NCBI GenBank assembly: GCA_030704615.1
Contig: CM060734.1
Location: 1,116,001 to 1,180,000, forward strand
Reading direction: 5' to 3'
DNA: 64,000 nt
Origin: Takakia lepidozioides
Taxonomy: Eukaryota; Plantae; Bryophyta
The notes under the pieces were generated by a model that saw only the letters and a program-made list of their open reading frames with translations, ran no database searches and was not told the origin of the DNA. Made by a program: the position numbers and the translations under genes. Positions 8,642 through 61,750 of this stretch are shown piece after piece; positions within the stretch are counted from its first letter, which is position 1; every line of letters starts with the position of its first letter.

Positions 8642-8812
8642 AATGGTTTTGAGAATAGATATTACCTCAACAATTATTTTCGACCTTACTCAAAAACTAT
8701 TTTTGAGGTAATATCTTTAAAATTAAAAAAAAAATGGTTTTGAAAACAGATATTACCTCAACAATTGTTTTTTACCTCCATCAAAAACTATTGTTGAGGT
8801 CATTTCTTTAAA
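8642..8812. repeat. Tandem duplication (~91-bp period) of a palindromic AT-rich unit
   Basis: AGATATTACCTCAA (8657-8670) is the exact reverse complement of TTGAGGTAATATCT (8703-8716). The unit repeats from about 8733. Confidence 0.75.
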
Positions 8813-35449: not shown

Positions 35450-35766
35450 GTCTCTCACTCTCTTCATACTTGGCAAACAAGGAGGCATTGTTTGAAACAA
35501 CTGCAAGAAACTCTGAAGTGCGTAAAGCATGAAAGTGTGGTTCGCACACAGAGGAACTGGCAGTTGCGTAAGGAGTAAGGCCATATCCCTGGATGAAAGA
35601 TTTGACAAAAATCTTTGATCAGAGTTGGCACGGTACACCAAGAGCAGGAACTCCAGTTTCCAGCCAACGAAGGAGAGGAGGATGAGGAAGAGCCTGCAGA
35701 GAGTTCAAACTCTCCAACACCAATTCAATTGAGTTATATGAGCGAAGAAGAAAGCCTAAAGTGAGC

Positions 35767-35919
35767 GAGGGTCTTGTGGAGGAGCAAAGGGGGACCGTTA
35801 TGTCCCGATGAGCAGCCGAAGCTCCGAGTTGGCCCGGCGGCCAGTTTGGGAGTTAGGCGCGCGCATCAAAGCGAGTAACTATGACATGAAGGGGAGCTTA
35901 CCGAAGTGAGGTGCGCGAC
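35767..35919 (+). mobile_element. PPT and 5' edge of an LTR (TG at 35801); same family as 48810-48961 (minus)
   Basis: GGAGGAGCAAAGGGGGACCGTTA|TGTCCCG. About 150 bp is near-identical to the reverse complement of 48810-48961. Confidence 0.7.
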
Positions 35920-36423
35920 AGGGAGGGGATAGAACACCACAAAGACCACGGAATGTGGGAGGTGGAGATGAAGACGGGGAGAGGGCACGAGGTGCTTCTG
36001 CCGGTGATTGACAAAGTTGAGGACGATGAGAGGGACCTTTCTGACCAGGATGACATCCTCCCGGAGATCCCCAAGCCCCAAACCCGGAGCATACAAGTTG
36101 GATTTGGTGGTCCCGGTGGGCTGCCGGAGAACCCCCCTGCAGCAGACGTCATGTCGGAGGCGGATATGAAGTTGGCCGCTGCCAAGTGGAGGCAACCCAC
36201 AGCAACATTGGCAGGGTCTTGGGGGGCATGGTGTACCCGGCAAAGCTTCAGATTCCTCTCTGCCGCTTGGTATCATTGCAGGTGATGAGACCTGCCCTCC
36301 CAGGCGATATCAACAAGCTGAAATTCTCTTTCCGGGAGGGATATTGAATGGGTCTACCGCGTTTTATGTTTCCATTGAGAACGACCATGCTTCTCGTGCC
36401 CACACTTCCGATGAGGTGGACAA

Positions 36424-37110: not shown

Positions 37111-37649
37111 CCTGTAACTCAACATTGCAGAATGTGGGACACATATTTATAGTTTTGTCACAACATGTAGTTTCCATTGAGACCTCCTTCAGTGTGTACA
37201 CACGGTTCCTCAAGTTCGAGCCCACTGACTTCACGGATTTCATTGAATATCTCCAATCTTCGGAGCTATGGAAAAGACTGCACATAGGCTATGAATCGTG
37301 ATGAATGATGAGACCTCTCACAAAATGGAAAGACATGACATCAGCTGGTGAAGCTGTGCAAGTTGCTCCCAAAGCATGCAAACGAGTTTATCAATCGTGC
37401 CGATGCTGTTGCGGCTTCCAGTTGATCATCTACCCATGCAGGTTTCTTGTAGCTATCCTTCCAGAGGGAATCATAGGTGATCTGAAGCTTGAAATCCGGC
37501 CCTCTTGGATGAATCTGGACCCACACTCCATCCCTGCTCCTTTAGCTATCCATGCCTCTGCCCAAATCATGCATACATCCTTGCCTTGTTGCTAGCAACT
37601 GACAATGACAGCTAGAATTCATGCAGCAAATACGACACCACATCTCGTT

Positions 37650-40320
37650 TAGCCATACCACCCAAACCCATAATTAGGACGTTCAGCCATATTGTCGAAC
37701 ACTCCCTTTGCATCCTCCATGCACCCACATTTGGCATACATGTCCACCAGGGCAGTGTTCAGGATCACATCTGGTACAATTCCAGCTTTGACGATGTCGC
37801 CATGCACCTCTTTGCCCTTTCCAGGGCTGCCAGGCTTGCACATGCACTGCAAACGCACACAAACGTGATGTGGTCGGGCTTCACCCCGTCGCACATCATT
37901 TGCTCATAGGTCTCCAAAGCCTCTATCCATGTCCCTGCTGTGTATACCTTGCAAGCATCGCACTCCACGACACCACATCTCGTTAGTGTTGAACACTCCC
38001 TTTGCATCCTCGATGCACCCACATTTTGCAAACATGTCCATTAGGGTTTTGTTTAGAATGACATCTGGTACAATTCCAGCTCTGAAGATGTCGCCATGCA
38101 CCTCTTTTCCCTTTTCCAGAGCTGCCAGGGCAGTGTTCAGATTGACATTTGGTACAATTCCAGCTTTGATGATATCCCCATGCATCTCTTTGCCCTTCTC
38201 CAGGGCTGCCAGGCTTGCACAAGCATTGCAAATGCACACAAATATGATGTGCTTCCCCCATCATTTGCTCATAGGTCTCCAAAGCCTCCATCCCACATCC
38301 CTGCTTTGCATACCCTGCAAGCATTGCACTCCATGACACCACATCCTGTTCAGCCATAGTGTCAAACACTCCCTTTGCATCCTAGATGCACCCACATTTT
38401 GCAAACATGTCCACCAGGGTATTGTTCAGAATGACAACTGGTACAATTCCAGCTCTGAAGATGTCGCCATGGACCTCTTTGCCCTCAGGGCAGTGTTCAT
38501 AATGACATTTGGTACAAGTCCAGCTTTGACGATATCCCCATGCACCTCTTTGCCCTTCAGGGCTGCCAGGCTTGCACGACGCCACATCTTGTTTAGCCAT
38601 AGTGTTGAACACTCCCTTTGCATCCTAGATGCACCCACATTTTGCAAACATGTCCACTAGGGTATTGTTCAGAATGAAACTTGGTACAATTCCAGCTCTG
38701 GAGATGTCGCCATGGACCTCTTTCCCCTTTTTCAGAGCTACCAGGGCAGTGTTCAGAATGACGTTTGGTACAATTCTAGCTTTGATGATATCCCCATGCA
38801 CCTCTTTGCCCTTCTCCAGGGCTGCCAGGCTTGCACAAGCATTGCAAATGCACACAAACATGATGTGCTTCCCCCCATCATTTGCTCATAGGTCTCCAAA
38901 GCCTCCATCCCACGTCCCTACTGTGCATACCCTGCAAGCATCGCACTCCACGACACCACATCTCATAGGTCTCCAAAGCCTCCATCCCACGTCCTTGCTT
39001 TGCATACCCTGCAAGCATCGCACTCCACGACACCACATCTCGTTCAGCCATAGTGTCAAACACTCCCTTTGCATCCTCAATGCACCCACATTTTGCATAC
39101 ATGCCCACTAGGGCAGTGTTCGGAATGACATTTGCTACAATTCCAGCTCTGACGATGTCGCCATGGACCTCTTTGCCCTCTTCCAGAGTTGCCAAGGCAG
39201 TGTTCAGAATGACGTTTGGTACAATTCCAGCTTTGATGATGTCTCCATGCACCTCTTTGCCCTTTTCGAGCGCTGTCAGGCTTGCACAAGCATTGCAAAT
39301 GCACACAAACATGATGTGGTCGGGCTTCACCCCTTCCCCCATCATGTGATCATAGGTCTCCAAGCCTCCATAGCTGTTGTGCATACCCTGCAAGCATCAC
39401 GTTCCACGACACCACGTCTCGTTCAGCCATAGTGTTGAAAACTCCCTTTGCATCCTCAATGCACCCATATTTGACATACATGTCCACCAGGGCTGTGTTC
39501 ATAATGACATCTGGTACACTTCTAGCTTTGAAGATGTCACCATGGACCTCTTTCCCCTTTTCCAGGGCTCCCAGGCTTGCACACGCATTGCAAACACAAC
39601 CACAATCGTGATGTGGTTCGGCTTCACCCCTTCGTGCATCATTCGCTCATCCAAAGCATCGTACCACATACATATATGAATCTGCTGAAATGCTCCTTGG
39701 TTTAAAGTCTGTAGCGCCTTTTTCAGTCTGCCTACCTCACAAAGCATCTTTACATGCCCAGAAGAGCCAGAAGAGGCATTGTGGACTCCCTCTCTTGATC
39801 CTCTTTCAGAAGCCAACGAGCTAACTTACAGAATTCAGTATGCATCACAGGGCCGAGCCTTGATCCCGTGCCCAAGCTGTGCATATCATGCGATCATGGG
39901 GTTACAAGACACCACATCTCCTTCAGTCAGATTGTCGAACACTCCCTTTGCATCCTCGATGCACCCACAATTGGCATACATGTCCACGAGGGTATTGTTC
40001 AGAACAATATGTGGTTCAATTCCCGCTTTGATGATGTCACCATGGACCTCTCTGCCCTTTTCCAGGGCTGCTAGGCTTGCACATGCATTGAAGACACAAA
40101 TAAAGGTGATGTGGTTGGGCTTCACCCCTTCCACACCATTTGCTCATAGGTCTCCAAAGCCTCCATCCCGCTGCAATCATTCCGTTCCAAGACACCACAT
40201 TTCGTTCAGCCATTAGATCGAACACTCCCATTGCATCCTCAATGCACCCACATTTAGGATACATGTCCACCAGGGTATTATTTAGAATGACATCTGGTAA
40301 AATTCCAGCTTTGTCAGACT
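37650..40320 (-). pseudogene. Decayed tandem PLS-class pentatricopeptide-repeat (PPR) gene array
   Basis: Repeated near-identical motifs [64 protein letters not shown] and ERDVVSWSAMLAGYAKQG. N-terminal-like VKMLCEVGRLKKAL near 39720-39760. Numerous frameshifts and deletions. No E/DYW domain seen. Confidence 0.9.
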
Positions 40321-40990
40321 CTAGAGTCAAAATCTCAAGCACCTGAATCATTATTTTTTCTTGTACTCTAACCGTACAGGTTGTGACAGTAGATGATTCC
40401 AAAAACTGAGATTATAATTCATGGCATCCATGTTATGATGAAACATAGAGAAGTCTCAGTTTTATCATAGATCAAAGCTCCCACTACCGAGTTGTATCCT
40501 AAATTGATCTGCAACTACAAGTAATGGAGCTTGAACAATGTATAACCAGACTGTCTCTCTGGTTAACATTTTTCAAAAACTAGGTATTCATAAACACATA
40601 CCGAGCCTCTGAAAACAGGGATCTTTAAAGAAAAACTCCAGGTAAAAGTTGTTTCCAAACAAGTAGTATTACCAAGTGTGCCAATCCACTGTGTATTTCT
40701 GACCTGTGGAGCCAGGTAGCGTTATGCTACTGTTATGCATTCTACTTAGAACCAGCATGAAATCCAGGGCAGAGCACATTAGTTCATGCTTTTTGATTTC
40801 TGTCCCCTAGGCTATTAATCTTGGTTGGTTTCAACTCAGCTTCTCAGTGTAGTATGACCATCCATTGGCCTATGCAAAATGACATTAGAATCCACTCTAT
40901 GTAGTGTAGATTCAACTGTGTCTTGTCAAATCAATCCTACAGAGAAACTAGAAACAGCAGTCTCATAGAGTTCCCTGGCTCTTATGTGCA

Positions 40991-41600
40991 GGGAAAAAAA
41001 AATTGAAAACCTCCCCCCTCAAATGCCAAGCACCCTTGCCTCTTCCAGTTCGAACTCTCGGACTCAGGACGCGAAGCATCCAAAGTACCCTCAAGCTCGA
41101 GAACGGGGAGGCAAAGGTAAAAAAAATGGGAGGGAGGCCTGCCCTTTTATACTCCCCCCCCCGCCCATACCCCCAAACCCAACCCCCCCCCCCCCCCCCC
41201 ACCGCATCCTGCACACAGCGCCACGTGGTGGTCCCTCCGACGACCGCGCGTGGCGGTCGCCCAACCACCCACCCTGCCACGTGCTCGTATTGCAGCCGCG
41301 GCCCGCCAGGCGACCGGCACGTGGCGGTTGCCCTGTTCTCCCTCCCGGCGACGGCACGTGGCGGTCGCCCTCTTCTCCCGCCTGCGACCTGAACGTGGCG
41401 GTCGTCCCGCCTGCCCCTCCGGGCACCCCCCTGCCGCTTGACCGCCACCTCAACGGAGGCGACTGGCGCTTGATGATGCCCTGCCGCCAGCTCACTGGCT
41501 CCGAGGTGACCGCCACTTTGGCGTCACACCTGCCACCTCCTTGGGCTCGTCGGCAATTGTGCCAAATCCCGTCAGTGTCGCTGACGCCAACGTGACGTCA
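40991..41600. mobile_element. GC-rich probable Mutator-like TIR/subterminal region with repeated CACGTGG motifs
   Basis: Begins GGGAAAAAAAAATTGAAAACCTCCCCCCTC. Several GCCACGTG/CACGTGGCG copies. No partner TIR or TSD found. Confidence 0.35.
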
Positions 41601-42178
41601 CTGCAACTGGGCCGAGCCTAGGAAGAAGAGGGATAGTCTTCCTCTCCCAATGCCCCTCCTTCACCGGGTGTTTGAGTTCAAGTCACTCCTGATGGAAGGG
41701 CCAATGCTCCCTACCCCAGTGCCTAAATACTTTGTTTTAACAAAGGAGTGGCAAACACCTATCATAATCCAATAGGTTCACCCAAGTTCAATAAGGTGAC
41801 TCTAAGTCCCTTAAGTCAATAAGTTCAATCAGTTTAATAAACGCACCAAATGGTACAGGTAGAAAGGTGAGACATTCAACTGCACTGCCCGGCTCTTGCC
41901 TGGATGTTTCCTTTTCCACTAGCTTCAGTTGGCGCCCTCTCTCACTGTTCAATATTGAGATGTATGAGTTACCATCCTAGATACCACCTGCACTCTGGGC
42001 CTCACAGTAATGCACAACACATGCCACACCAGCGTGTAACAAACACTTTTGATTCGACAGATTTATAGCAGACAAATGCGTGAAACACTGGCACTAGACA
42101 TGGTTAAATGAAATACCAGCCAAAACCTAGTCAAGTAAGCGTTGTGAACAAACAGCCTTCCGTCCCAGTACCACTAAC

Positions 42179-42898
42179 CAAATCTTTGTAGAAAGGAGTT
42201 TGCTCAGGAAGCAGAGCTTTGTCTGCATCCAGACCCTTGCTTGCATACTGCTCCCCATAACATTTCGTGTCTAGCTGTCCAGCCCCATAGTCAGGTGGAC
42301 CTGACAGAAACGCAAACACGCGAGCTGCAATACAATCCCACAATTAGTCACAATCTGCGTAACTCCAGCAACTTGCTGGCAACAACGTATTCAGTCCACA
42401 TGCTTCAACTTTTGGCCCTGTCTGCACCTTGACTTCTTCGGTAGGAAGGAGTCAAAGGCCAAAGACATGCCATCCTCAACATAGTCAGTGCAGATTCAGC
42501 ACAAAATGATAAGAGCCGTCAAAAGACAGAACTAAGCTGATTGCAGTGGCGAAGTTTCGTGCAACATTCTCCAGATAAGTAAGAAGTACTGCTATGTTGA
42601 AACGGATGTATTTATCACTCACAGATTACTGAATAGCAAGCACAGAACTCTTTTTATATGAAGCACGGTAGTTAAAACCTGGGGCAAAGCACTGATACAA
42701 ACACTACACCAATTGACAGGCACATGAGTAACTGAGGCATTACGTATTCACCAATTTCTAAGTGTTTGGTAGGTGTTTGTTAGGCATTCCCACAACATAA
42801 CCCAAACTGCAAGCAGCCAATGATGAGGCATGTTTAGTACCCATAGCAAAAGTTATCCCATGTTCAGATCCCAAATACTTGACGAGGGCATCCATGGC
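42179..42898 (-). pseudogene. Orphan two-exon fragment of a plant Sec23/Sec24-family gene
   Basis: Partial exon 42841-42898 (AMDALVKYLGSEHGITFAM) and exon 42179-42324 (ARVFAFLSGPPDYGAGQLDTKCYGEQYASKGLDADKALLPEQTPFYKDL) join in frame across a GT-AG intron. Neighbouring exons were not found. Confidence 0.75.
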
Positions 42899-42899
42899 T

Positions 42900-43003
42900 C
42901 AACGGCGATTGTCTTAAGTTGTTCTTAACCTAATGATTAAGTGGGCAGAATTTAGGTTAAGTGGGAGGGGGTGTCAATCAGCTATTAATCAATTTTTAAC
43001 CCC
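42900..43003. mobile_element. Mutator-like TIR (single end)
   Basis: (rc) GGGGTTAAAAATTGATTAATAGCTGATTGACACCCCCTCCCACTTAACC... It abuts and truncates the Sec23/24 exon. Confidence 0.45.
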
Positions 43004-43303
43004 TAAAAAAAACAAAAAAAAACTTATAGAATGAATGAAGTAACTGTGAGTACAACAAGTCATTATGAGTGTACAAAGCGCCGCCGTTTGTCACGACCGA
43101 TAAATTGGGAGATGGTTAGTTATTTATGGTTGTAGGACAATCGTATCCGTATATGACAGCTGTTAGGTTAAGCCATCTTGTGCGATAGATAGGAGTGGGG
43201 CCTTTCTTGCCATTTTCACTGTCTGTCCATTGCTCTTGCAGCTCAGATAATTTGTCGTTGAAGTGTGAGTGCAGTGAGTGTAGAGAGAGTGTTTCTCCGA
43301 GAG

Positions 43304-45941
43304 ATGAAGAAAGTCATCAGGATGGTGAAAAAAGCTGTGCAGCAGGCTTTACCAGGAGCAGTTTCGATGATGGCAGGGGAGTTGCGAGGGGGAGATATTA
43401 ATTTGATTATGGGCGGTCGTGAGCGGAGAGCACAGTGGAGACAGTCCGGGATGTTAGAGTTCTTGTTATTGTCTGCAAAGAGTCTGCCAAAGGCCAGTAT
43501 GGCCACGGTCATGCAATTCTATAATTCTTATGATCCTGTTACTAGGACTGGAACAGTCAATAACATCGAGATACTAGTTGATGTGCGTACTGTCATGGAG
43601 GTCTTGCTACTGCCTCAGGCCAGTTTTGATGTCGAGGGTTTTAAGGACGAGTCTTTTGTTCCTGAGGATTACTTCAAGGGGGGTTCCACTGCATGTAATC
43701 AGACGGGAGGCTAGGCTGTTGCCAAGGCGCTTAAGCAAGAGTTAATGGAATGGATGAAGTTCGCAGTTAGTCGATTGGCATTGAAGAAAGTGTCCACTTA
43801 TGTAGCAATTGAATGCAGTGGTATCAACATTTCAAGGTTTTCAACTAAATTGGGCAAAGTTTGTTTGCGGGAAGATCCATGAGGAATTGATCTCCAAAAG
43901 GAAGAGTGGGAAGACAGACATATTGAACTGTGCAATCTATTTGTCTATGATTTTGCAGCATCGATTGAAGATACTGGCCCCAGCCGATGTGATTGCTACC
44001 ATGATTATTGACAAACCAGAGTCAAGCAAAGCGAATGAAAGGGTTTCAACACTGGCGGCAGTTAATACCAGTGTTGCAATGGTGGTGTCGGGAGGCAAAA
44101 ATGCAAGCAGCCAATCGTCTTTTGCGACGAAGCTCCGTGACTTAGCTGAGGGATTGCAAGTGGTAGCAGCAGAAGCCCTTGATCACGAGGACTTGCAAAA
44201 GGAATTGGCCGATTTGAGGGTTACGCACACTGCCACCCTATCGCGAAATCAACAATTACAGCTTGCGTGGGATGATGCGAAGAAGAGAATGGAAGCGGAT
44301 GCAAAGGAACTCCAGAAATTTCAGGAGCAGTGGAAGATGAAAGAGATTCAGTATCAGAAAATTGTTGTTGAGAATGATGTAGCGATTGCCATGCAGACAG
44401 AGTAGATAAAGTCGAAGGAGGCTCGTGTTAATGAATTGGAGAGACAATTGGCAGAGACTACCAAGCAAGTGGCGGAGATGGGGAAACAACCTTCAACCAT
44501 AGACACCCCTGAGGAACGATATATACCATTGCAGCAGGAGTTTGCTTCTTATCGCACTGAGCAGGAAGAGGAAATGAATGTGATGGAGGAGACCATGAAA
44601 GCACAAATGTCGGAATTGGACCAATTCCGAGAGACGATGAGACCCGCAGCAGTGGTTGGGCTCAGTGTTTTACAGGGATCTGGCATGATGTGTGTTATGC
44701 TCAGAGTCTCAGTCAAGGCTATTTGTATGACAGTGCTATTTTGAAATTGTTTTTCAATGGCGGAGAGGAGCCGATTGATTTGGAGGAGGATTGGGAGGAC
44801 CTGTGCACCTATTGCATGGAAAATTTGGCCGTGGAGATGGTGGTTAGGGGAGAATTGGTAGTAGCCCATCCCGAGCAGTTTTTGTTTGTTGTTGGTGATC
44901 CTGCCAGCCGTTGTTTTCTGTATTATAAGCAATTGGAGGATAGGCTGGAAGCATTTCGACAGTCACACCTCGAGGATAGGCGATGAAATCGAGTACATGC
45001 TTGTGGATTTCTCTCTACTATTCCGAAGCCAGATGACAAATTGTTGTCAAGGTTCCTGGAAATGGTAAAACATCTTGTGGCTCAAGTATTGGACGAGAAC
45101 CAGTTCCATACAATGTTGGAGAGAGCTCATCGCAGGTATAGACTGGTTTCGGAGTGTTTACACGGATCTGCTTATGTCTGGACGCAGACCGCGATAGCAG
45201 AGGGTAGGAAGATGGATGGAAGCAAAATCATGGCCGGAGTTATGACCGCCAAATGGATGGAGGATTTGTATATCAATCAACCCAGTGCCACTCAAGTTTC
45301 TCAAGTGGGGTTCGTGATTTTTGAACAATGTCATTTTCCTACTAACTGGGAGTACCACATTGCAACAGGCGAGTGGATTGCAAAGTTGGGCATCAGGCCA
45401 ACACCAATCAGTGGACCATGGCCGCGAAATATTACAGGTAGATTTGGGGTATGTGTTTGTTCACGTCGTGGTCAATGGCGAGAACGAGCATCTGACGTCA
45501 TTACCTTATAATTGGCCATTGATTCCTGGAGAGTTCAGCATTGCATAAAATTGTGAAACATCATACAAATCATTCCAGGGACTGCATGCGACTCATTATG
45601 ACTCTTTGTGTTTTATGGCATCGATCTTTTGCGGGGTATTGGCAAAGTGGTGTCATTTTTATCATGTTGTTGTTGATATTAACAGGCCAATGTTGGGAGG
45701 ACATGAGTTTGGGATGGTGGCCAAGTTATTGCATCATCCGGCCTAGGAAATGAGGGTGTTGGAATTGATGTGTTTGACATGATTTCTTTAGTGTGCGGAT
45801 CCTGCCGTGTATGATGATTGGGGGCCCTTGCGATACCATCCTTACATGGCATTCAAGCAGTTGCAGGAGGAGGGTGATGAGCGTGACCACCGTCGATCGC
45901 ATGAACCTGAAGAGAGACGGGAAAAGAGGCCTAAGAATTAG
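43304..45941 (+). pseudogene. Long (~850-codon) retroelement accessory ORF: plant-transposon-protein-like N-terminus, coiled coil, unknown C-terminus
   Basis: ORF-track pieces 43265-43714, 43809-44405, 44436-, 44690-, 45041- and 45321- chain via stops and frameshifts. The N-terminus (VMQFYNSYDP..V....VDVRTVMEVLLLP..G; LNWAKFVCGKIHEEL) parallels the 34781-35449 ORF. It ends in the basic tail REKRPKN*. Confidence 0.6.
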
Positions 45942-46520
45942 TTGCAGGCGACTTTGTGTTTGCGGGGGCGCTACACAATTAGGAGTGGGGCTATGTATAA
46001 TAATAGGAATTTCTGACTCAATTACAATTCTAAAAAATTTTAATGTTTTTTTCCATCGATATACTCTGCGATACCTTCGATATTGTTGCGATAGAGCAGT
46101 GTTCATCGATATCTTGTATGCAGCCGATAGTCTATCCTTGACTGGATGATAGAAGAAATGGATGAATGATTATAAAAGATGGATAGAAGAGGTTGAGCGA
46201 TTATTAAAGTTGTTGGAGCGTCTGCTATATATTGCATTCATGTGAAGCAGACGGTGTCAGTTGAGCCAGAGAGCTGTGACCAGGGAGAGTAGAGCAGAGT
46301 AGAGTAAAATGAGTGAGTAAGAGTTGGAAGATAGAATTATTCTTCAATGGTAGATTAAGTACTGCATTCTTGTGATGTTGTGTTCGTAAATGAATAGAAG
46401 AGAAGAAGAAGAAAAAAAAAGTTCAATTCACTTTGTGTTGTGTGAAGAATGGAATGATGGAATGAGAATTTGATTCTGAATGTAATGGTTGAAGAACTAT
46501 AATTATGTGAGATAGTGAGA

Positions 46521-46844
46521 ATGTGCACAAATGGAGAGGATAAAGATTCTGAGCGAGAATTAATTCCTAGCTTACCCAGAGAAATATTGATTCGGATATT
46601 TAAGAGTTTATCTTGTAATGAGGCAGAGTTAGTTTGAATAGAAAGTGTGAGTAAATCCTGGAGTAATGAATTATCAATTCTTTATAAACATCGTCAATTG
46701 GGACGTAAATGGATCAGTATGTGGTGTTGTCCGATAGATGGTTATCCAGAGTTCATGAAGGAGCAGATTAAGGAAATGAAGATAAAAAGTCTTCGATTGG
46801 ATTAACTGGAGGAGTATAACGGTGAAGTAAAATCATTTGCATAG
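46521..46844 (+). pseudogene. F-box mini-ORF 1 (two internal stops)
   Basis: MCTNGEDKDSERELIPSLPREILIRIFKSLSCNEAELV*IESVSKSWSNELSILY...; shows the F-box pattern L..LP.E.L..IF..L...V.K.W. Confidence 0.65.
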
Positions 46845-46849
46845 CAAAG

Positions 46850-47173
46850 AGCAATGATGAGGGAATAAAAGAAGTATCAGAGTTGATCACTGGATTACCA
46901 GATCATTTATCGATAATAATCTTTCAGAAGCTTTGTTGTAGCGATAAAGAAGTATTTTTATTACAATTAGTCAATAGAAGATGGTACAGAGAGATATCAA
47001 TTCTATACAGGAGTTGTTATTGGAAGCACAGTTGGTTGTAGACATGGTATAGACTGTTTGAAGACTATCCTGAACTTATGAGGGAGTGGAGTAATTCTTT
47101 TGGTGAGGGAAAATCCCTGGAGCAACTGAAGAAACAAGATTGGTGGTGAAGAGCAATCGATAGTGATGTGTGA
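46850..47173 (+). pseudogene. F-box mini-ORF 2 (internal stops, no in-frame ATG)
   Basis: SELITGLPDHLSIIIFQKLCCSDKEVFLLQLVNRRWYREISILYRSCYW...YPELM; paralogous to units 1 and 3. Confidence 0.65.
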
Positions 47174-47453
47174 AAAAAAACGGATAGTAGATCCTGTAGA
47201 ATTAATTACTGGACTACCTAATAGTCTGTCGTTAGATATCTTTAAAAGACTGCAATGTAGTGACAGAGAGATAATCAATTTATGGCTGGTGAATAAAGGA
47301 TGGTGTCGAGAGCTATTGACCTTGTATCAAGCAGATCACTGGAGGAGAGAATTAGATGAACAATGGTATTTGATCTCAGCCAATGGGATAGAGTTGATAG
47401 AGAATGGAGGGAATATCATTGAAACTGGTAGAGTCTTAGTTGCTATAGATTGA
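47166..47453 (+). CDS. F-box mini-ORF 3 (open, 95 aa)
   Basis: MCEKKRIVDPVELITGLPNSLSLDIFKRLQCSDREIINLWLVNKGWCRELLTLYQADHW...; F-box motif followed by only a short C-terminal tail. Confidence 0.65.
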   Translation: MCEKKRIVDPVELITGLPNSLSLDIFKRLQCSDREIINLWLVNKGWCRELLTLYQADHWRRELDEQWYLISANGIELIENGGNIIETGRVLVAID

Positions 47454-47637
47454 GACAAGTAATGGTAGAAAGCTCTTTGTGGAGAGAATGAAGGGAAATA
47501 GAGTAGCATGGCATCATTATGTTGTTGTCGTATAGTGCTTTCCCCAGCGAACGAACTCTAGACTAATTGATCCTTTCCTTAGGGTTGATTATAGTTTTAT
47601 TCTACAGGTAGGACTTAGATAGTGACCATAGCATCAT

Positions 47638-48927
47638 GTACGACCACGGACCCCTGCACTAACCGCAGTCAGGTAGGCGGTTCAGTGAGCCCAACCTACA
47701 CCGCAACTTACCACGGCCTGCCGTCACCCTGACCGCGTGCGCTCAGGGCTCGTCATATAAATGGTGCGTCTGCAAGAGGTAAGTGAATAGTCAGGACTCC
47801 TTGTATTCCGAATATAAGGAAGATTAGACGTTTGTCATTCTCCTCTGGGATCTTGTTTTTACCTTACGTTTTATGTTTTGACTCGGGCAGGAAAAGACTG
47901 AGTGAACAATTAGGTACATTTAGATAAATTTCTCGCATTTGAGTTAAGCACAGGGCTAACTACATGAAGAGTTTTGAGTGGCAGTATGGCTGCACCATTG
48001 GCGCTCCCTCGCCAGGAGCATTCCTTTGAGTACCGGGTGATCGGACTTTATCGCATCATTTCTAGCACCAGGACTGGAGACGTACCTGGCCCCGAGGTCA
48101 TAGTGATTTGCAGGCTGATGCGACGACGCATCTTGACCATTGCAGAGGAGTATCGGGAGTATTGGATCTCCGCACGAGTTGGACCCCGAGGCCCCGGAGC
48201 CCGGACGGCCCCCATTGCTCATTTTTTTCGGTTCAACACTCGTTGGCCAGGCTGTTGCCAGCCACCCTTTCTTGCTTATATTCATTTTGATTCGGCCCTT
48301 GAGGTCCATCTTGCGTGGGCACCATCACCAACACCGTGTTGTACACGTGCAGTAGGGTCGCTAGGCGGTCCGCTCCGTTGAGGGAGTGTGTGGGGCGCAC
48401 TATTTGCGGACATCGCCCCGCCTTCGTAGACTGGTTGATTGGAGTCGGCCCAGGAGAGGACGGAGTCGAGAGTGAGCGCCTCCCACACCCGAGGAGGGCC
48501 TGCTGACCATTCTTGCCTCCTCGGTACTATCACCGAGGAACCACGCCATCAGCTCTTACTCGTGAGTTGATTTCATTTGGTTCATTAACGCTGCTAGGCA
48601 CAATTAGAGATTGCCCGGTAGAGAGTTCTTTTGTTGCATCACCTGCTGTAGCTCGTAGGACACTACCCCCGGACCCAGTTCGGTCAGTAGTTTTTCCTTT
48701 TGGTCAGGGTCCCTTTGGCACAGTTGCCTTGTTTACCGCCCCAAGTGGTACAGACTTCATCGCCTGGTTGTTCGGAGACAACCAAGGCAGGGAAGTGATG
48801 GTACACCCGTCGCGCACCTCACTTCGGTAAGCTCCCCTTCAAGTCATAGTTACTCGCTTTGATGCGCGCGCCTAACTCCCAATCTGGCCGCCGGGCCTTC
48901 TTGGAGCTTCGGCTGCTCACCGGGACA
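47638..48927 (-). mobile_element. Putative ~1.3-kb LTR containing a plus-strand (antisense) ORF cassette
   Basis: The right edge (48927) with adjacent PPT matches the 35801 LTR edge. The left edge at TGTACGAC (47638) is tentative. Contains TATAAAT (~47756), donor GAG|GTAAGT (~47779), an acceptor near 47953, and ORFs 47986-48381 and 48513-48830. Confidence 0.5.
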
Positions 48928-49080
48928 TAACGGTCCCCCTTTATTCTTCCAAAAGACCCTCCACCAATTTGGGCCTAGTGGAAATTCCGTTTGGTAGATG
49001 GCAGTCCGGAATAGCTCCCCACTCCTTGGTCGCTTTCCGGCTTGCTCGCTTACTCACTAGTTTTTGGTCACCAACGGGCT

Positions 49081-51440
49081 TGCACCGTTCTCGGGGTTAC
49101 TACTCCCTACATATACTTCTGTGACTGTCTGCGGGGGTTTCACAAACAACCATGCCATTTTATGGCGAACCACCACGAAGACCCTCGACTCCCAGTGATG
49201 AGTCGCGGTGAGTCTTGGCCCACCCACCACGGCCCCATTGGACCGTGCTGAGTCCCAAGACTCCCCACGACTCCCACCACAAGGTCTCCGCCCCATGGTG
49301 AGTCCTATGCCACTCCCACTAAGTCTCGCTAAGCTACCACCACCCCTTGTGGAGCCACCCCCACCGCAACCCGGTGTGCGGGGCTCCACCTAGTGAGCGC
49401 CTCCGTCTCCTTGAGTGCCTTGGGCACTCAAGGGTGCTTCAACCCCAGTACCTATCGCTGCCACTGCCCCCACCACAGGGGCAACCCCTCCTGCGTCCCG
49501 ACCCCCTACCCTCAAGGCAAAGGGGCCGCGACACACACCCCTACCAACAGGGAGTCGATGTCCTCATCGACTTGTCCATTTTGTAGAAACGTACATCATA
49601 AAAGTTGTGGCGTCCCACATCAAGGAGTTTGTTTCCGTACCATGGCGTCCCATGGCAAAAGAACCAAACCCCACACTTGACTCTACTCTCCACTAGCTAG
49701 TTCGGCCGACTTCTTCCAAGTCGCGGCCAAGGGTGGAGCCTCTCAAGCCCCACCGAGTGCACTCTTCTTGGCCTACTTCAAGGCCAAGGAACGATGCTCC
49801 CCGAGGATCGAATCGCCTTACTGCAACAACATTGCTTGCGATCGCTCATGATGCCGCTTTTGGCATCACTTTGAGAAAGGGTTCACCTTGAACCCTTTTT
49901 TACTAGGAAGATAACCTTGAACCAACCGTGCGCCCCAATCACTACAATTGGGTCCGCCTTGGAATGCTGGCCTGAGGTACGGGAACACACTGAAGCCGCA
50001 CTACGACTTCGTCCCGAGGCTACACGATTATAGTATGTGAACGGAAGCACATAGCTTCCGCGTTAGCCCGCACTACAAGGCAACCCCCTCGGTAGCGCAG
50101 TTATAGTACGCGCACGCGCCAGGTGCGCACTAGCACGTGAACTCCCAAAGACGGCGCAAGTTTCCTTGCCCCTCTGATGGGAATCACCCGATTTCAGCAC
50201 TGCGCAAACACACAATTAATCCAATTTACCTCTCCCACTTTTGTAAGCTAGCATGCATTCTACACACTAGCCAACCATACCATGCATCACCATTCCAAAC
50301 AAAATAGGAGGCGCAACATTTGGCAACCATTTCATTTATAACAAAATTTGTACAACACAAGTTTTTGCAATCGGATTCCTGAGCTAGCTAAGCCGGGCTA
50401 AGCATGCATTTCCTCCCCCTCGATCCAAGGTTGATGTCCCCATCAACGCTTCTTCCGCTTTTGAGGTCGCCCTTCAAAAGCTGCAACCGCCTCGGATGCG
50501 TTTCCCATTTCTGAGGCACGCACCCAAGTTGCCTCCACATGATAATAGCCATTCCATTTCACGAGATACTCCGTTTCTTGATTCTTGAACCTCCTCGACT
50601 TAAGCACTGCCTCCACCTCGTACTCAGGTTCATTTTCATGATCCAACAGCACAGGTGGCGGACGCAACACTTGATGCCGATTCGGACGCGCTTCATTTTT
50701 GAAGTAAGGCTTCAAAAGGGAGACGTGGAATATCGGATGCACCTTGCTGTTTGCCGGCAGCTCCAATTCATACACATCCTCATTCATAACCTTCCAGATG
50801 CGAAAGGGTCCCACATACGGAGGTACGAACTTCGGACTCACTTCCAGAGGTAGTCGGAAATTCTTGATGTTCAACCAGACCTCCGTGCCTGCCTCAAACT
50901 TAACTTCCCTCCGCTTCCGATTCGCCTGCCTTTCATATCGTTTCCTAGCTTTGGCAATGTTGTATTTTGCGAGCTTCAACAAACGCTCGCGTTCTTCTAG
51001 CACCGCCGCTGCTGCCGGTTCCTCAACATCCTGGGCGGCCCAACTTGTCGGCCCAATACAAAAGGGGAAACTCCCGTTGCGGAGTGTTTTGTGTTATTAT
51101 AACAGAACTCTGCCGCGTCCAAGTGCTGCACCCAATCTGATTGGTCTGCCGACACGTAATTCCGCAAGATCTGCTTCACCACGGAATTCACTCTTTCCGT
51201 TTGGCCGTCCGTCGTAGGTCGGAAGGCGGTGCTCATCTTGAGCCTCGTCCCCATCTTTTTCCAAAGTGCCCTCCAAAATTTACTCGTAAACTTTGGATCG
51301 CGGTCCGAGACAATATCCTTCGGGAGTCCATGATGCTTGAAGACGTGGGCGAAGTAAAGTCGGCCCGTCTCCTGCGCCGTTGCCGTCTCCTTGGTGAGGA
51401 TGAAATGTTCCATTTTACTGAACCTATCCACCACCGCACC
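49081..51440 (-). mobile_element. Chromovirus (Ty3/Gypsy) 3' fragment, copy 1: partial integrase, chromodomain, PPT and 3' LTR
   Basis: IVSDRDPKFTSKFW..STAFRPTTDGQTER; YVGPF; HPIFHVSLLKPY; chromodomain EYEVEAVL..YLVKWNGY..ATW. PPT at 50409-50420. The LTR starts TGCA at 50408; its far end (TGCA at 49081) is tentative. Confidence 0.88.
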
Positions 51441-51899
51441 TAATGTACTTGACCCACAACTATTGGCAGACCAAAGCTTAAGGGATGTTGGAAGTCCAGT
51501 ATTGTCTCTCTCACCTTCTGTGGATGCAAGCCAAGATTCAGTTGCCTCTGACTTGCCCCTGGATGTTGTCGACGAAGGCGATGCCTTCATCAATGAGGAG
51601 ATTCCATATCCATTGCCTCGAGAAGCCACTTTTCTCAGCAATTGAGACCCAAATTATTCAGCTTCAAGCGGACATGGATTTTTCAAAGGCCCCAATCACT
51701 CTCCAAATGAAAATCATCTCAAGGCTATTTGGAGGGCAAGCTTGTGATGGCCCCACAGACTATGCCTCTATGGGACTGGGCCAACTACTTTCTATTGCAG
51801 GTTAACACTAGCAGTCCCCATCATGACACAAACCCTTATGCTTTTCACTGCCTACAAATTCATTTGTATTTTAAATTAACTATATCGGTTTCATTCCAA

Positions 51900-54629: not shown

Positions 54630-56137
54630 CTATGCAACTCCGACCACTACCCTATATCCATCTCCCTCCCACCGTCCCTCGTCCCTTTCCGACCCCTTCT
54701 GGATATACTCACCCCACCCCCACAGCCGCGGATCCTTTCACCTATACCACAGTGCAATATCACAGCCTTCCAAAAACACTTCCAACCTGCCTCCTATAAC
54801 TTCATACACAAAATATCCCCAAATGCTGTTAGATACCAACCTTCCCCCCACCGAAGCCTGGGCCATAACTGAAAACCTACTTACAGCCACTATGCAAGAA
54901 ATGACAAAAAGCATTCTGGCTACGTGATCCTCTCCCCCTGACCTCCCACAAACTACTCGATGGCTATCTCACCCACACCCAAAAACGCGAATGGACTCTA
55001 CACCTCAACATCTAATATCACTCCATTAGACGCGCCCTCTCCATCACTCCTACTCGCCCAACCCCCTCATATAACAATTGGCAAGTCGACCCACGTATTA
55101 CTGCCTTGAACACCCTACCAATATGCCAACCATTAATGCATCCCCCCACAAACCCGCTTGCTCTCCCCCAGTGGACTGCCTCTCTCTCCAAGATTGAAAG
55201 AGATGCCCAAAAAGCTGTATATGCCATCACAAAGCATAAAGCCACCGAAAACCACAAAAAATTCGTCACTTCCTTTGGAAAGCTACTACACGACCACCCC
55301 AAAAGAGCTCACAAAGCCATCTTCAACCCCGCAATCAACCCACCTATCGACTGCATCAAACACAGATTTGGCCATATGTTAACCCACCCTGAGGATATTA
55401 GACATGAAATTTGGCTACAAGCTTCTGACTCATACACACCTACGGTCAATAACTGCTTGCACCCTAACCTACACCAACACAACTGTTTATGTAAAGTAAA
55501 ACACTACCCATGACACGATCTTGATGGCTTCTCACTTGAAAAGCGAGGCCAACCCGAGGACCTATTCAACTCATGCCTAAAAGCTCTTTCTCAATCAAAA
55601 GCCCCGGGCCCGGATCTAATCCCCAACGCCATCCTACAAGCACTTGACCCCCCGTTCCATTCTCTCCTCTTTAATTTTTTTCAACTTTGCTACCTACTTC
55701 AACGTATCCCACTCTCGTGGAAACATAGCCGAACCATTCTATTATTCAAAAAAGATGACCCAACAGATCTAAGTAATTACAGACCAGTAGCCCTCGCCAA
55801 CACTATCTATAAATTATTCACCAGTACCCTAACAAGGATGTTGTCTAATTTCGGAACACCAGATTTTAAGTGACCCCCAAGAAGGGTTCCGGGCCACACG
55901 AAGCACAATCCGTCAGATACAATACGTTATCTCCGCCCTAGAAGACGCCAAGCTTACCAAACAAGACATCTACCTCCTCTATATCGACTTAAAAAATGCC
56001 TTCGGCTCTCTGGACCACCCTAGATTATTGGCCATCATGTCGGATCTAGGTTACCCCACCGACGCCATCCAACTCATCGGTAACATCTACACCAACAACA
56101 CCACAGAATATTCTGGTTCCTACTATGGCTCCAACCC

Positions 56138-56171
<34 letters not shown>

Positions 56172-58325
56172 TCCCATCCTAAGCGGCACCATCCAAGGGG
56201 ACACGTTGAGCCCCTATCTCTTCATTATCTTCCTTGAACCATTACTAAGATAGCTCGCCCGAGGCAACTTAGGATAACAATACAACACCTCTACGTCTAA
56301 CAAAATATCCGCAGCCGCTTACGCAGACGACCTCACTATCCTAGCACACAAGCCACAACATCTCAACCGCCAGGTCGATAAACTCTCCCGCTTTAACCAA
56401 TGGTCAGGCATGGAACTGAGTCTTCACAAATGTGCGGTCACTGCAGCCACACATAATAGCAAATTCACTAAATCTACGATCGCCTCCCACTGCAAGCTCC
56501 ACATCCGTTACCAACAAAAACATTTTCCCTTCTTAGGTCCAGATGAACCCTACACATACCTAGGCATCCAACTAGTCCCATCGCTTACCTAGAATATCCA
56601 AAAGCAAACAACCCTCTCTAAACTAACAAGAGCCTAGCCCTTCTCAAATCCCCCATTCGTCCCAAACTAGCTATCATCCAACAAGTCCTCCATCCACAAA
56701 TCCAATACGCCTTTCATGCAGCCCCCTTTTCCGTGCCTGACATTAGACAGCTGGACAAAAATATTATCCAACTCACCAAACGTATATGTGGCTTACCTAC
56801 CAGTACCCCCAACGTCCTCACTCAGCTCCCCCAAGACAATTATGGCATAGGATCCACTCCCCTTATTACCTCATATGCATGCACACTTGGTACACAACTC
56901 CTAGAAGCCCTCAACGACCCGGGTCGTCTAGGGCTCATTTTCCACCCACCGCCCGCACCCTCTTTCTCCTGTGCCAAATGAAAATAAGCATCCAAACTGA
57001 TCTTCCTGGCTATCCCACCTCCATATCACCACTTGAACGCGATTGGAACAATAGCCCCTCTTCATCACAATTTGAAATCTCACATCCTAAACAGAAAAAA
57101 CACATCCTCGCCTACTTCAAAGCTCGACATATCACTAACTTTGCCCAATTCACCACTACGGATGGACACCGGCTCCTAACCTCAAGTCAATTCACCTTAA
57201 AACACTCACAGGCCACGATTAAGACACGTCGCTATCTACTCCATCTGCGTCTCCTCTTTTGCCACCCATCTGCCTCCTGCACCTTACAATGTGATATGCC
57301 ATGCAAGCTCTACTCGCACAATATCCAAGACCTCCTCCCGGAATTCAAAACAGCGCCAGCCCCATCAACCCCCCAGTCTATACCCCCCCCCCCCCCCCCC
57401 CCCCCCCACCCCCTCACCGCACCTCCCTGTATGTCACCGACATCACCTAACAGACATCAACAATCACCCCCTATATCCCAATTGTCGCCCACTCCACCAC
57501 TGTACCCCCACCTACCAGACCCAGACCACCCCGAGGCCTTTGTCATTGAAGCTATCCTCGACATCAAAACCCAAACATCATTTGATGCCTTCGGAGCGAT
57601 ATGTGTTGATACATATTATTTATGTAAATGGGAGGGATTCCCAGCAGAAGATAACACATGGCAAATTGAAGACGACCTCTTTGGATCACATGACGACTGT
57701 GACCCGGTTCATAACCGCACTCTCCTCATCAGATTCCACAAAACCACAAACACCACCCATGTAAGGTACACCCACCAACATCATGTCTCGCAAACCCAAT
57801 CCACTGACACCCGCTACATCAGCCAACCACTAGCCACTCCTAATATACAAATACACATCACCGAATGCAACCCAGACAAAGATATTATACCCGGCCACCC
57901 ATTAATATGCCCCAGCACCTCACAATCCAACATTTACACAATCAGCGGTAGTTTTGCCGGATCAATTCCCAATGTCCGGCTTGCCTGGCTTTGGTATAAA
58001 TATTCCACCTCTGACACACATAATAGCCAGCTACAGCCTCCAAAATAAGACTTTGCCACAGAGATCAGCTGGCTTCTTAACCGATACCTTGGCAATACCC
58101 CCGCTAAGAAGCCCCGTAATCTCAACAAACTGGCGCAAGCCTACTCCCATACTACCCTCCCCCCAGACATCCTCAAACTCCTCATCGCCTCATTTCAGTT
58201 GGCTCACTCATATTACTCCAGCCCACTAACCTGCCCCATGGAGCTCTCCACATACAGCAACCCACATCCACGTGACCGTATATTCGGTGCTTTAGGAACC
58301 GCTACCCAGCACACATGGACAGGAG
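54630..58325 (+). mobile_element. 5'- and 3'-truncated non-LTR retrotransposon (Dualen/RandI-like LINE): APE tail, RT, chromodomain, MTase-like domain
   Basis: APE end SDHYPI at ~54639. RT motifs KAPGPD, YRPVALANTIYKLF, QEGFR, LEDAKLTKQDIYLLYIDLKNAFGS, GTIQGDTLSPYLF, AYADDL, YTYLG. Chromodomain at 57536-57680. MTase-like segment at 58145-58325. Stops and frameshifts present. Confidence 0.88.
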
Positions 58326-61300
58326 GAGCCTCACTCACCCGCTCGCAGGGCCACTTGCACGAGGCCCTGCTCCTCCCAGTGCACTCTTCTTGGCCCACTT
58401 CAAGGCCAAGGAACGATCCTCCCCGAGGATCGAATTGCCTTACTGCAACAACATTGTTTGCGACCACTCATGATGCCGCTTTCGGCATTACCTTGAGCAA
58501 GGGTTCACCTTGAATCCCTTTTTGACTAGGAAGATAACCTTGAACCAATCGTGCGCCCCAATCACTACAATTGGGTCCGCCTTGGAATGCTGGCTTGCGG
58601 TACGGGAACACGCCGAAGCCGCACTACGACTTTGTCCCGAGGCTACACGATTATAGTACCTGAATGGAAGCACGTAGCTTCCGCATTAGCCCGCACTACA
58701 AGGCAACCCCCTCGGTAGCGCAGTTATAGTACGCGCACGCGTCAGGTGCGCACTAGCACGTGAACTCCCAATGAAGGCGCAAGTTTCGTTACCCCTTGGA
58801 TGTGAGTCACTCGATTTTGGCACTGCGCAAACACACGATTAACCCAATTTACCTCTCCCACTTTTGTAAACTAGCATGCATTCTACACACTAGCCAATCA
58901 TACCATGCATCACCATTCCAAACAAAATAGAACGCACAACATTTGGAAACCATTTCATTTATAACAAAATTTGTACAATGCAAGTTTTTGCAATCGGATT
59001 CCTGAGCTAGCTAAGCCGAGCTAAACATGCATTTCCTCCCCCATGCTCCAAGGTTGATGTCCCCATCAATGCTTCTTCCGCTTATGAGGTCGCCCTTCGA
59101 AAGCTGCAACCGCCTCGGATGCGTTTCCCATTTCTGAGGCACGCACCCAAGATGCCTCCACATGATAATAGCCCTTCCATTTCACGAGATACTCCGTTTC
59201 TCGATTCTTGAACCTCCTCGACTTAAGCACTGCCTCCACCTCGTACTCAGGTTCATTTTCATGATCCAACAGCACAGGTGGCGGACGCAACACTTGATGC
59301 CGATTCGGACGCGCTTCATCTTTGAAGTAAGGCTTCAAAAGGGAGACGTGGAATATCGGATGCACCTTGCTGTTTGCCGGCAGCTCCAATTCATACACAT
59401 CCTCATTCATAACCTTCCGGATGCAAAAGGGTCCCGCATACGGAGGTACGAACTTCGGACTCACTTCCAGTGGTAGTCGAAAATTCTTGATGTTCAACCA
59501 GACCTCCGTGCCTGCCTCAAACATAACTTCCCTCCGCTTCCGATTTGCCTGCCGTTCATACCGTTTCCTAGCTTTGGCAATGTTGTACTTTGCGAGCTTC
59601 AACAGACGCTCGCGTTCTTCCAGCACCAGTGCTGCTGCCGGTTTCTCAACGTCTTGGGCGGCCCAACTTGTCGGCACCAGAGGCGCTTTTCCATAGACCA
59701 ATACGAAAGGGGAAACTCCCGTTGCGGAGTGTTTTGTGTTATTATAACAGAACTCTGCCGCATCCAAGTGCTCCACCCAGTCCGATTGGTCTGCCGACAC
59801 GTAATTCCGCAAATCTGCTTCACCACGGAATTCACCCTTTCCGTTTGGCCGTCCGTCGTAGGTCGGAAGGCGGTGCTCATCTTGAGCCTCGTCTCCATTT
59901 TCTTCCAAAGTGCCCTCCAAAACTTACTTGTAAACTTTGGATCGCGGTCCGAGACAATATCCTTCGAGAGTCCATGATGCTTGAAAACGTGGGCGAAGTA
60001 AAGTCGCATCGTCTCCTGCGCCGTTGCCGTCTCCTTGGTGGGGATGAAATGGCCCATTTTACTGAACCTATCCACCACTACCATGATTGCATCGAATCCT
60101 CTTGACAGCGGCATAGCAGTCATGAAATCCATCGAGACACTTTTCCAAGACCCCTCTAGAATCGGCAAGGGTTGTAACAGCCCCGCTTGCTTTTTGTACT
60201 CGCTCCGGTTTTGTTGGCATGTGGTGCATGTCTTGACATACTCCTCGGCCTCCTCCCTTAGTTTGGGCCAGAAATACTCTTTCTTCAGGAGTGTCGCGGT
60301 GCGTTTGGCTCTGCTGTGGCCCGCAAGCGTGTCATCATGGCATTCTCTCAAGAGACTATCTCTGATCCCTCCCATCGGCACGTAGAGACGCTTTTATTTG
60401 TACCGGAGCAGTCCATTTTGCAAGTGGAACTGCGATTTAACCTCCATCCTCAAGTCCTACATCACGGACTTTGTCATCTCGTCCTTTTGGTAAGCCTTCC
60501 GGATCTTCTTTTGGAGCGCCGTCTCGCCCCTATATACCAACATGAGCTGCTGCTTTCTACTTAGAGCATCGGCCACCACATTGTCCTGTCCCGGTTTATA
60601 TTGGATATCCACGTTGAACACCGCCAAAGTATCTTGCCACCTAAGTTGTTTTGGGGACAACTTAGGCTGTGTGGCAAAATACTTCACCATGACATTGTCC
60701 GTGAACACCTTCACCGGGTTGGAACCAACATAGTGGCGCCAAAGCTCATGACAATGCACCATCGCGTTCATTTCTTTCTCGTGCGTTGGCCACCGTCGCT
60801 CCACTTCATTCAGTTTCTTACTTTCGTAAGCCACTGGATGTCCATCGTGTATGAGTACACCTCCAATCGCGAAGTCCGACGCATCCGTATGAATCTCAAA
60901 TGGACGGTCGAACTCCGGAATTTTCAGGACTGGAGCTTCGGCCATCCGCTGCTTCAACTTGGCAAAAGCTTGGCCACAAAAGGTGTTCCATACACATACC
61001 TTGGATTTACACAGAAAGTCCGACAGTGGCCCCGTGATTTTGGCGAAAATTCTCATATACTTTCGGTAATAGGAGGCGAGTCTTAGGAAGGATCGCACTC
61101 CCGGGACCGAAGTCGGAGGCTCCCAGTCCAAGATCGCCCTCACATTCTGTCATCCATTTTTATCCCATCCTGTGTAATCACATGCCCTAGGAACTCTACT
61201 TTTGTGACCCCGAATTCGCACTTTTTAGCTTTGGCATACAGCTTTCATTCCCGCAATTTCTAGAACACCCTTTTGAGGTGCTCCAGATACTCTTTCTTTG

Positions 61301-61750
61301 TTTTCGAGTACACCAAGATGTCGTCGATGTACACGATTACAAAGTCATCCAACTACTCCTGGAAATGGCTGTTCATTAGCGTACTAAAGGTTGCGGGTGC
61401 GTTGAGTCGAAAAGGCATCACCAAGAACTCATACGAACCATATCTTGTCCTGCACGCAGTTTTCTTCTCATCTCCTTCCGCCACTCGGATTTGATGGTAG
61501 CTGGAGCGCAAATTGATCCGGCTGAAATACTTCGCTGCTGCCAACCGATCGAAGAGGTCGTCGATCCTTGACAAAGGGTATCGGTTCTTGATAGTCACCT
61601 TATTCAGAGCCCTATAATCGACACACATCCGCAGCGTCACATCCTTCTTGTCTGCGAATAGCACCGGGGCTCCGTATGGTGACTTACTCGGCCGGATGTA
61701 ACCCTTTGACATTAGATCCTTGAGCTAAGCCTTCAGCTCGACCAACTCTC
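58326..61750 (-). mobile_element. Chromovirus (Ty3/Gypsy) copy 2: RT, RNase H, integrase, chromodomain, PPT and truncated 3' LTR
   Basis: [62 protein letters not shown] region, SMDF, chromodomain. PPT at 59032-59042. LTR from 59031 is near-identical to copy 1. The 5' part is interrupted at ~61755 by another Ty3 element. Confidence 0.92.

Follow-up and report, generated by a model that had tools for sequence, protein, structure and literature searches.

Three F-box-like mini-genes in a decayed copy of a repeated, probably mobile-element-borne module, the likeliest carrier being a retrotransposon LTR

The window, i.e. the whole stretch of 64 000 nucleotides analysed in this study, is plant DNA dense in transposable elements (TEs). 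Its forward strand contains, at 46521-47453, three units of ~320 bp arranged head-to-tail, each composed of its own start, a 45-codon F-box-like core and a tail of ~50 codons. The array and its immediate surroundings comprise the following features.

45792..47918, forward strand: candidate limits of a solo LTR, with TGT...ACA ends and a 5-bp TTTAG direct repeat on both sides
46226..46520, forward strand: leader upstream of ORF1, C-poor and purine-rich, with TATA-like motifs at 46171 and 46226
46521..46805, forward strand: ORF1 (unit 1), with ATG at 46521, F-box-like core at 46557-46691, tail, and TAA at 46803; premature TGA at 46635
46854..47149, forward strand: ORF2 (unit 2), with ATG-ATG at 46854-46859 and F-box-like core at 46880-47014
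47166..47453, forward strand: ORF3 (unit 3), intact, with F-box-like core at 47199-47333, helical tail and TGA at 47451

The ELI..LP cores begin at 46557 (unit 1), 46880 (unit 2) and 47199 (unit 3), exactly where an earlier note on this DNA had approximately placed three F-box-like units, and the pattern ELI..LP......IF..L.C...E......V...W..E....LY is common to all of them. Both ORF1 (ATG 46521) and ORF3 (ATG 47166) open with Met-Cys, the latter encoding 95 amino acids from its ATG or 96 if counted from the GTG at 47163. The ATG-ATG of ORF2 (46854) is, in this copy, one base out of frame with its own F-box, the frame of which is open over 46826-47038 and then meets a premature TAG (47039), a TGA (47147) and a next in-frame stop at 47171. 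This copy is therefore broken, with a premature stop in ORF1, a frameshift and a premature stop in ORF2, and only ORF3 open. A His codon within ORF3 (47337-47339) is private to this copy, Tyr being present in all of the other contigs aligned (16 of 16). Since the units occupy different frames, they represent three separate mini-genes rather than a polyprotein, and, as described earlier, they are intronless. The overlap that had been described between the last stop of unit 2 and the ATG of unit 3 does not exist, the stop at 47171 sitting 3 nt beyond the ORF3 ATG. No further unit was detected within the window when the units were searched against it by tblastn and blastn. The leader is repeated together with the array, one contig of the source genome spanning 46067-46452, and is a candidate promoter.

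Protein searches were carried out with the open pieces of the ORFs as they stand, rather than with repaired or consensus versions. The Pfam F-box and F-box-like profiles were the best families for all three units, which matched them in the same register and from profile position 1-2. The single-unit scores were weak, near or below the gathering threshold (i.e. E = 2e-3 to F-box-like for the first piece of unit 1; E = 3e-3 to F-box/F-box-like for unit 3; and E = 3e-4 to F-box and 1.7e-4 to F-box-like for unit 2), with unit 2 just passing PF00646 (20.9 bits, cut-off 20.5). When the three units were combined into a profile and searched against the PDB, Cdc4 (3.5e-4) and Skp2 (0.01) were retrieved, followed by Dia2 and FBXL17, in alignments where the Leu-Pro start and the Trp line up and where a two-residue insertion follows helix 1. 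The same profile searched against 1.84 billion representative proteins yielded two matches at E <= 1e-3, one being the F-box-like domain of a 983-amino-acid protein and the other a low-complexity repeat artefact. Neighbours in the ESM Atlas included streptophyte F-box clusters. The AF2 model of ORF3 was of low confidence (mean pLDDT 59, rising to ~80 over residues 20-40); the helices that it places at residues 20-29, 34-43 and 45-80 fit a three-helix F-box, within the limits of such a low-confidence model, and a Foldseek search of this model (pLDDT 59) against the PDB returned nothing.

Other searches with ORF3 were negative: a word-index protein search found no homologue, an exact-protein look-up found no record, and a metagenome scan with the ORF3 protein gave 106 pattern matches, none of which was confirmed by tblastn. 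A further metagenome scan, with a back-translated ELITGLP...IF pattern, gave 85 loci, all at chance level by tblastn. The tails of ~50 residues matched no Pfam domain, and a C-terminal substrate-binding domain (LRR, WD40, kelch or FBA) is absent. Given the shared Pfam register, the profile matches in the PDB, the match to the 983-amino-acid protein and the ESM neighbours, we conclude from the sequence comparisons that the units are real but very diverged F-box domains without annotated close relatives, and the F-box identity assigned in the earlier note was thus upheld by the profile comparisons, both from the units to Pfam (three of three) and from their joint profile to known F-box proteins.

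The three units are only distantly alike at the DNA level. No match between units was found by blastn, and nucleotide identity between them is 47-53% over 78 aligned codons, while tblastn aligned unit 3 with unit 2 at E = 6e-16 and with unit 1 at E = 4e-7, as expected from the earlier observation that the protein motifs were kept while the DNA diverged. The codon alignment is gapless over these 78 codons, with third positions being the least conserved, and since it runs this far the tails are homologous too, though far more diverged than the cores. Constraint between units was estimated as uncorrected pN/pS by the Nei-Gojobori method with bootstrap limits, the two alternative reading frames of this DNA serving as controls. 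Across the F-box core, pN/pS was 0.26-0.59, with bootstrap 95% upper limits below 1 for all three unit pairs, compared with 0.66-1.18 in the off-frame controls; the core pN values were 0.27-0.40 and pS was saturated, ranging from 0.64 to ~1.0. The evolution of the cores, for which a dN/dS comparison between copies had been proposed, is hence not neutral when measured between the three units. The tails gave pN/pS values of 0.65-0.90, significant for unit 2 against unit 3 only. From the saturated pS and the low core pN/pS we conclude that the units were triplicated long ago and that their F-box cores were held under protein-level constraint, although such constraint may go back to a time before capture, when the paralogues were host genes.

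The module also stands out by its base composition. The plus strand of 46250-47500 contains ~10% C, against 26% G, 35% A and 29% T, and this C-poor block is sharply bounded and takes in both the coding and the non-coding parts of the module. The stops had been attributed to later C>T decay; such (RIP-like) decay was rejected as their source. Differences from the other genomic copies, counted over the whole 5.9-kb stretch compared and not over the array alone, were symmetric (C>T 118 vs T>C 113; G>A 146 vs A>G 136), and the codons found in the paralogues at the positions of the premature stops (TTA/AAT and AGT/GAA) contain no C. Because there is no C>T excess relative to the other copies, C-poverty seems to be a property of the family.

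Contigs from two DNA runs of the source organism were placed on 44500-50400 at a likeness of at least 80%. While single contigs had a depth of ~50-77, the array (45879-47651) reached a summed depth of 2700-5300, with 13-23 distinct contigs per site, corresponding to ~45-90 copy equivalents of the array family in the source genome. The summed depth of both flanks was below that of the array (~260-1400 on the left and ~770-2080 on the right). A joint 46846>47104 seen in contigs indicates that two-unit variants occur elsewhere in the genome. Since the block is repeated and such variants exist, we regard the array as mobile-element cargo and not as an ordinary gene cluster. Contigs from two RNA-type runs covered the high-copy LTR to the right (48809-49659) and parts of the left flank; none fell on the array, which does not prove silence but lends expression no support either. 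Just after the array, the segment 47652-47848 had a summed depth of ~24500, far above that of the array, and contains a TATA-like motif at 47756; it may be a promoter core shared among several repeat families.

For the block that carries the array, the probable identity is a retrotransposon LTR, present here in solo or detached form. The candidate limits at 45792 and 47918 are to be read against shifted controls, of which 8 out of 81 contained an equally good TG...CA/repeat combination (chance expectation ~10%). Depth steps occur at ~45880 and ~47850, and 45783 is the end point of a contig derived from a related copy of the left flank. On its sense strand, the array has a G>C skew similar to that of the window's gypsy copies, and MULE- or CACTA-type carriers are disfavoured because no terminal inverted repeats were found in 41500-48810. 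The proposal that the array is borne by a retroelement was borne out as regards repeated DNA of mobile-element type, where its depth places it, but not as regards a retroelement, since the window holds no second LTR, no primer-binding site (PBS) and no pol linked to it. More precisely, neither the block nor the units recur elsewhere in the window, the gypsy copies of which have other LTRs; no PBS of tRNA-iMet type was found near the block within 2 mismatches; and no gag-pol is linked to the array in the window. A 21-nt purine run at 45909-45929 adjoins no clear end, and no adjacent polypurine tract (PPT) was seen. A search of the window for tRNA and Rfam families was negative.

The surroundings of the module contain the following further features.

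~37600-40400, reverse strand: PPR-repeat gene
43262..45508, forward strand: left flank, with open frames of 150, 199, 112 and 174 amino acids in a chain, frame changes and a coiled-coil part
48809..50442, reverse strand: 3' LTR of a very high-copy Ty3/gypsy chromovirus, given as context outside the module; contains no F-box unit
50443-51641, reverse strand: integrase and chromodomain of the chromovirus, which is a fragment
55016-58500, forward strand: LINE, a chain of reverse-transcriptase frames followed by a 420-amino-acid ORF with a chromodomain (Pfam E = 1.6e-7)
58369-61724: second copy of the chromovirus gypsy family

The left flank is present in ~10-20 copy equivalents and shares its G>C skew with the array. 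None of its frames matched Pfam, two of the ORFs were blank in the word-index search, and the ORF compared with the ESM Atlas gave no usable match. The chain looks like an orphan element protein, and the left flank may be either the 3' interior of the element to which the array belongs or an older element into which the module inserted. The LTR of the chromovirus reached a summed depth of 1e5 to 2e6, compared with ~60 for single contigs, and the loose contig ends located before 48809 contain, in other copies, the reverse complement of a PBS of tRNA-iMet type. A 169-nt piece of the end of this LTR was also found, inverted, at 35754-35922. The sense strand of the LINE (55016-58500) has a strong C>G skew.

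The internal repeats of the PPR gene dominate the direct-repeat families of the window; its open frames are short, and it may be a pseudogene or contain frameshifts. Between this gene and the left flank lies a GC-rich, Pro/Gly-coding stretch of low complexity (40960-41600), open in several frames on both strands, which includes a C18 run (41183-41200) and a 37-bp tandem repeat (41309-41404). At 8642-8823, two tandem units of 91 bp are 84% alike, each apparently containing an internal inverted repeat when inspected by eye, and look like a MITE or hairpin.

We consider it probable that this locus holds a mobile-element module, moderately repeated in the genome and decayed in this copy, which is likeliest a retrotransposon LTR and has three ancient paralogous F-box mini-genes as its cargo. 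In the protein of each mini-gene, an F-box would stand between a short leader at the N-terminus and a helical tail of ~50 residues, so that intact copies are predicted to produce F-box-only proteins of ~95-105 amino acids that could dock on SKP1 through the F-box. As they lack an LRR, WD40 or kelch domain, such proteins might either use the short tail to deliver a target to the SCF ligase or take up SKP1 in competition with the F-box proteins of the host, and docking on SKP1 would presumably profit the element. If the ORFs lie in the U3 of an LTR, they would occupy the 3'-terminal part of the full-length RNA, and their expression would need a subgenomic RNA, splicing or an internal promoter, for which the TATA-like motifs at 46171 and 46226 are the candidates. 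A fuller version of this reading, in which a bryophyte-type retrotransposon lineage keeps an intra-LTR cassette of three F-box-only genes whose SKP1-docked products degrade or titrate a host factor restraining the element, is one that we put forward only tentatively.

The same array could also have arisen as passive cargo, three small host F-box genes having been captured and amplified by a mobile element to which they are useless, with the constraint dating from the host phase and decay setting in after capture. In plants, F-box genes undergo tandem duplication and loss at a high rate, this copy retains one open ORF out of three, the RNA-type contigs are absent from the array, and the telomeric elements of Drosophila offer a precedent for TEs with F-box gene fragments (PMC13534243). 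Against this stand the retention of the three-unit layout with separate starts and the search results, as neither the 1.84e9 proteins nor the word search contained a host-type relative of the units or of the tails, and we judge passive capture unlikely. If the units were instead tandem repeats without coding function from the regulatory region of an LTR, their likeness to the F-box being accidental, this would account for the ~320 bp periodicity located between two TATA-like motifs, in what is probably a U3-like region. Such an origin is close to refuted and extremely improbable, since the units are too diverged for blastn and yet their proteins align down to E 6e-16, third codon positions are the least conserved, and all three units match one protein family in the same register.

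As to what the mini-proteins might do, they could be SKP1 decoys or, like P0, adaptors through which RNA-silencing factors are degraded. This more specific mechanism draws on the F-box homology and the mobile-element context only, and on the analogy with P0, Clink and HIV Vpu/Vif; the role of substrate selector would fall to the tails, which are short and show weak constraint only (pN/pS 0.65-0.90), and we regard the mechanism as quite unlikely.

The F-box domain is the plug that joins proteins to the protein-destruction machinery of the cell. Transposons carry accessory genes, and viruses hijack cullin-RING ligases by means of F-box mimics. The earlier note knew of no description of this arrangement; our literature search likewise found none, nor one of a plant retroelement with conserved F-box genes of its own. 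Should the proteins of intact copies bind SKP1, they would establish a new class of counter-defence, or of host manipulation, by transposons, a retrotransposon counterpart of the viral F-box suppressors and of ligase hijacking of the Vpu/Vif type, and would provide ready-made minimal F-box proteins to study. What the locus itself contributes is the three-unit anatomy, an ancient and constrained triplication, a rough copy number for the family and the absence of annotated relatives.

Compared with canonical F-box proteins (Cdc4, Skp2 and FBXL17; PF00646 and PF12937), the units of the array have the same 45-residue motif, with its Leu-Pro start, hydrophobic helix pattern and Trp, but differ in having a tail of ~50 residues instead of a substrate-binding domain and a two-residue insertion between helices 1 and 2. 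Several F-box mimics of genetic parasites, namely polerovirus P0, nanovirus Clink, the poxvirus Ank/PRANC proteins and Agrobacterium VirF, have demonstrated SKP1 binding and known targets. Like these, the array encodes a small F-box(-like) module of a genetic parasite, of the type used to redirect a host SCF ligase; unlike them, it is located in an endogenous repeat, comprises three diverged paralogues and is known here from its sequence, which shares no kinship with the mimics beyond the generic F-box. Accessory genes are also found in the LTRs of animal retroviruses, where MMTV sag lies in U3 and HIV/SIV nef overlaps the 3' U3, both being expressed from their own or spliced RNA. The array, for which placement in U3 is a candidate, would resemble them as an accessory gene set in the U3 of an LTR, at the 3' end of the genomic RNA, whereas its proteins are unrelated to those of sag and nef.

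Closer in the type of sequence carried are the telomeric retrotransposons of Drosophila, which captured F-box gene fragments (PMC13534243) and would thus share with the array the combination of a retroelement and sequence derived from F-box genes; these elements are, however, non-LTR, and contain fragments of an identifiable host gene without conserved stand-alone ORFs (PMC13534243). A survey of fusions between TEs and F-boxes concerns host genes of nematodes (PMC12062965). The additional ORFs (aORFs) of plant LTR retrotransposons lie either in the interval from pol to the 3' LTR or ahead of gag, and are env-like or antisense (PMC7264820); the review of these aORFs names neither ubiquitin nor the F-box nor intra-LTR ORFs (PMC7264820). 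The array would resemble the aORFs in consisting of extra ORFs beside the gag-pol of a plant retroelement that are kept across copies and are mostly of unknown function (PMC7264820), and differs from them in its cargo, three F-box mini-ORFs.
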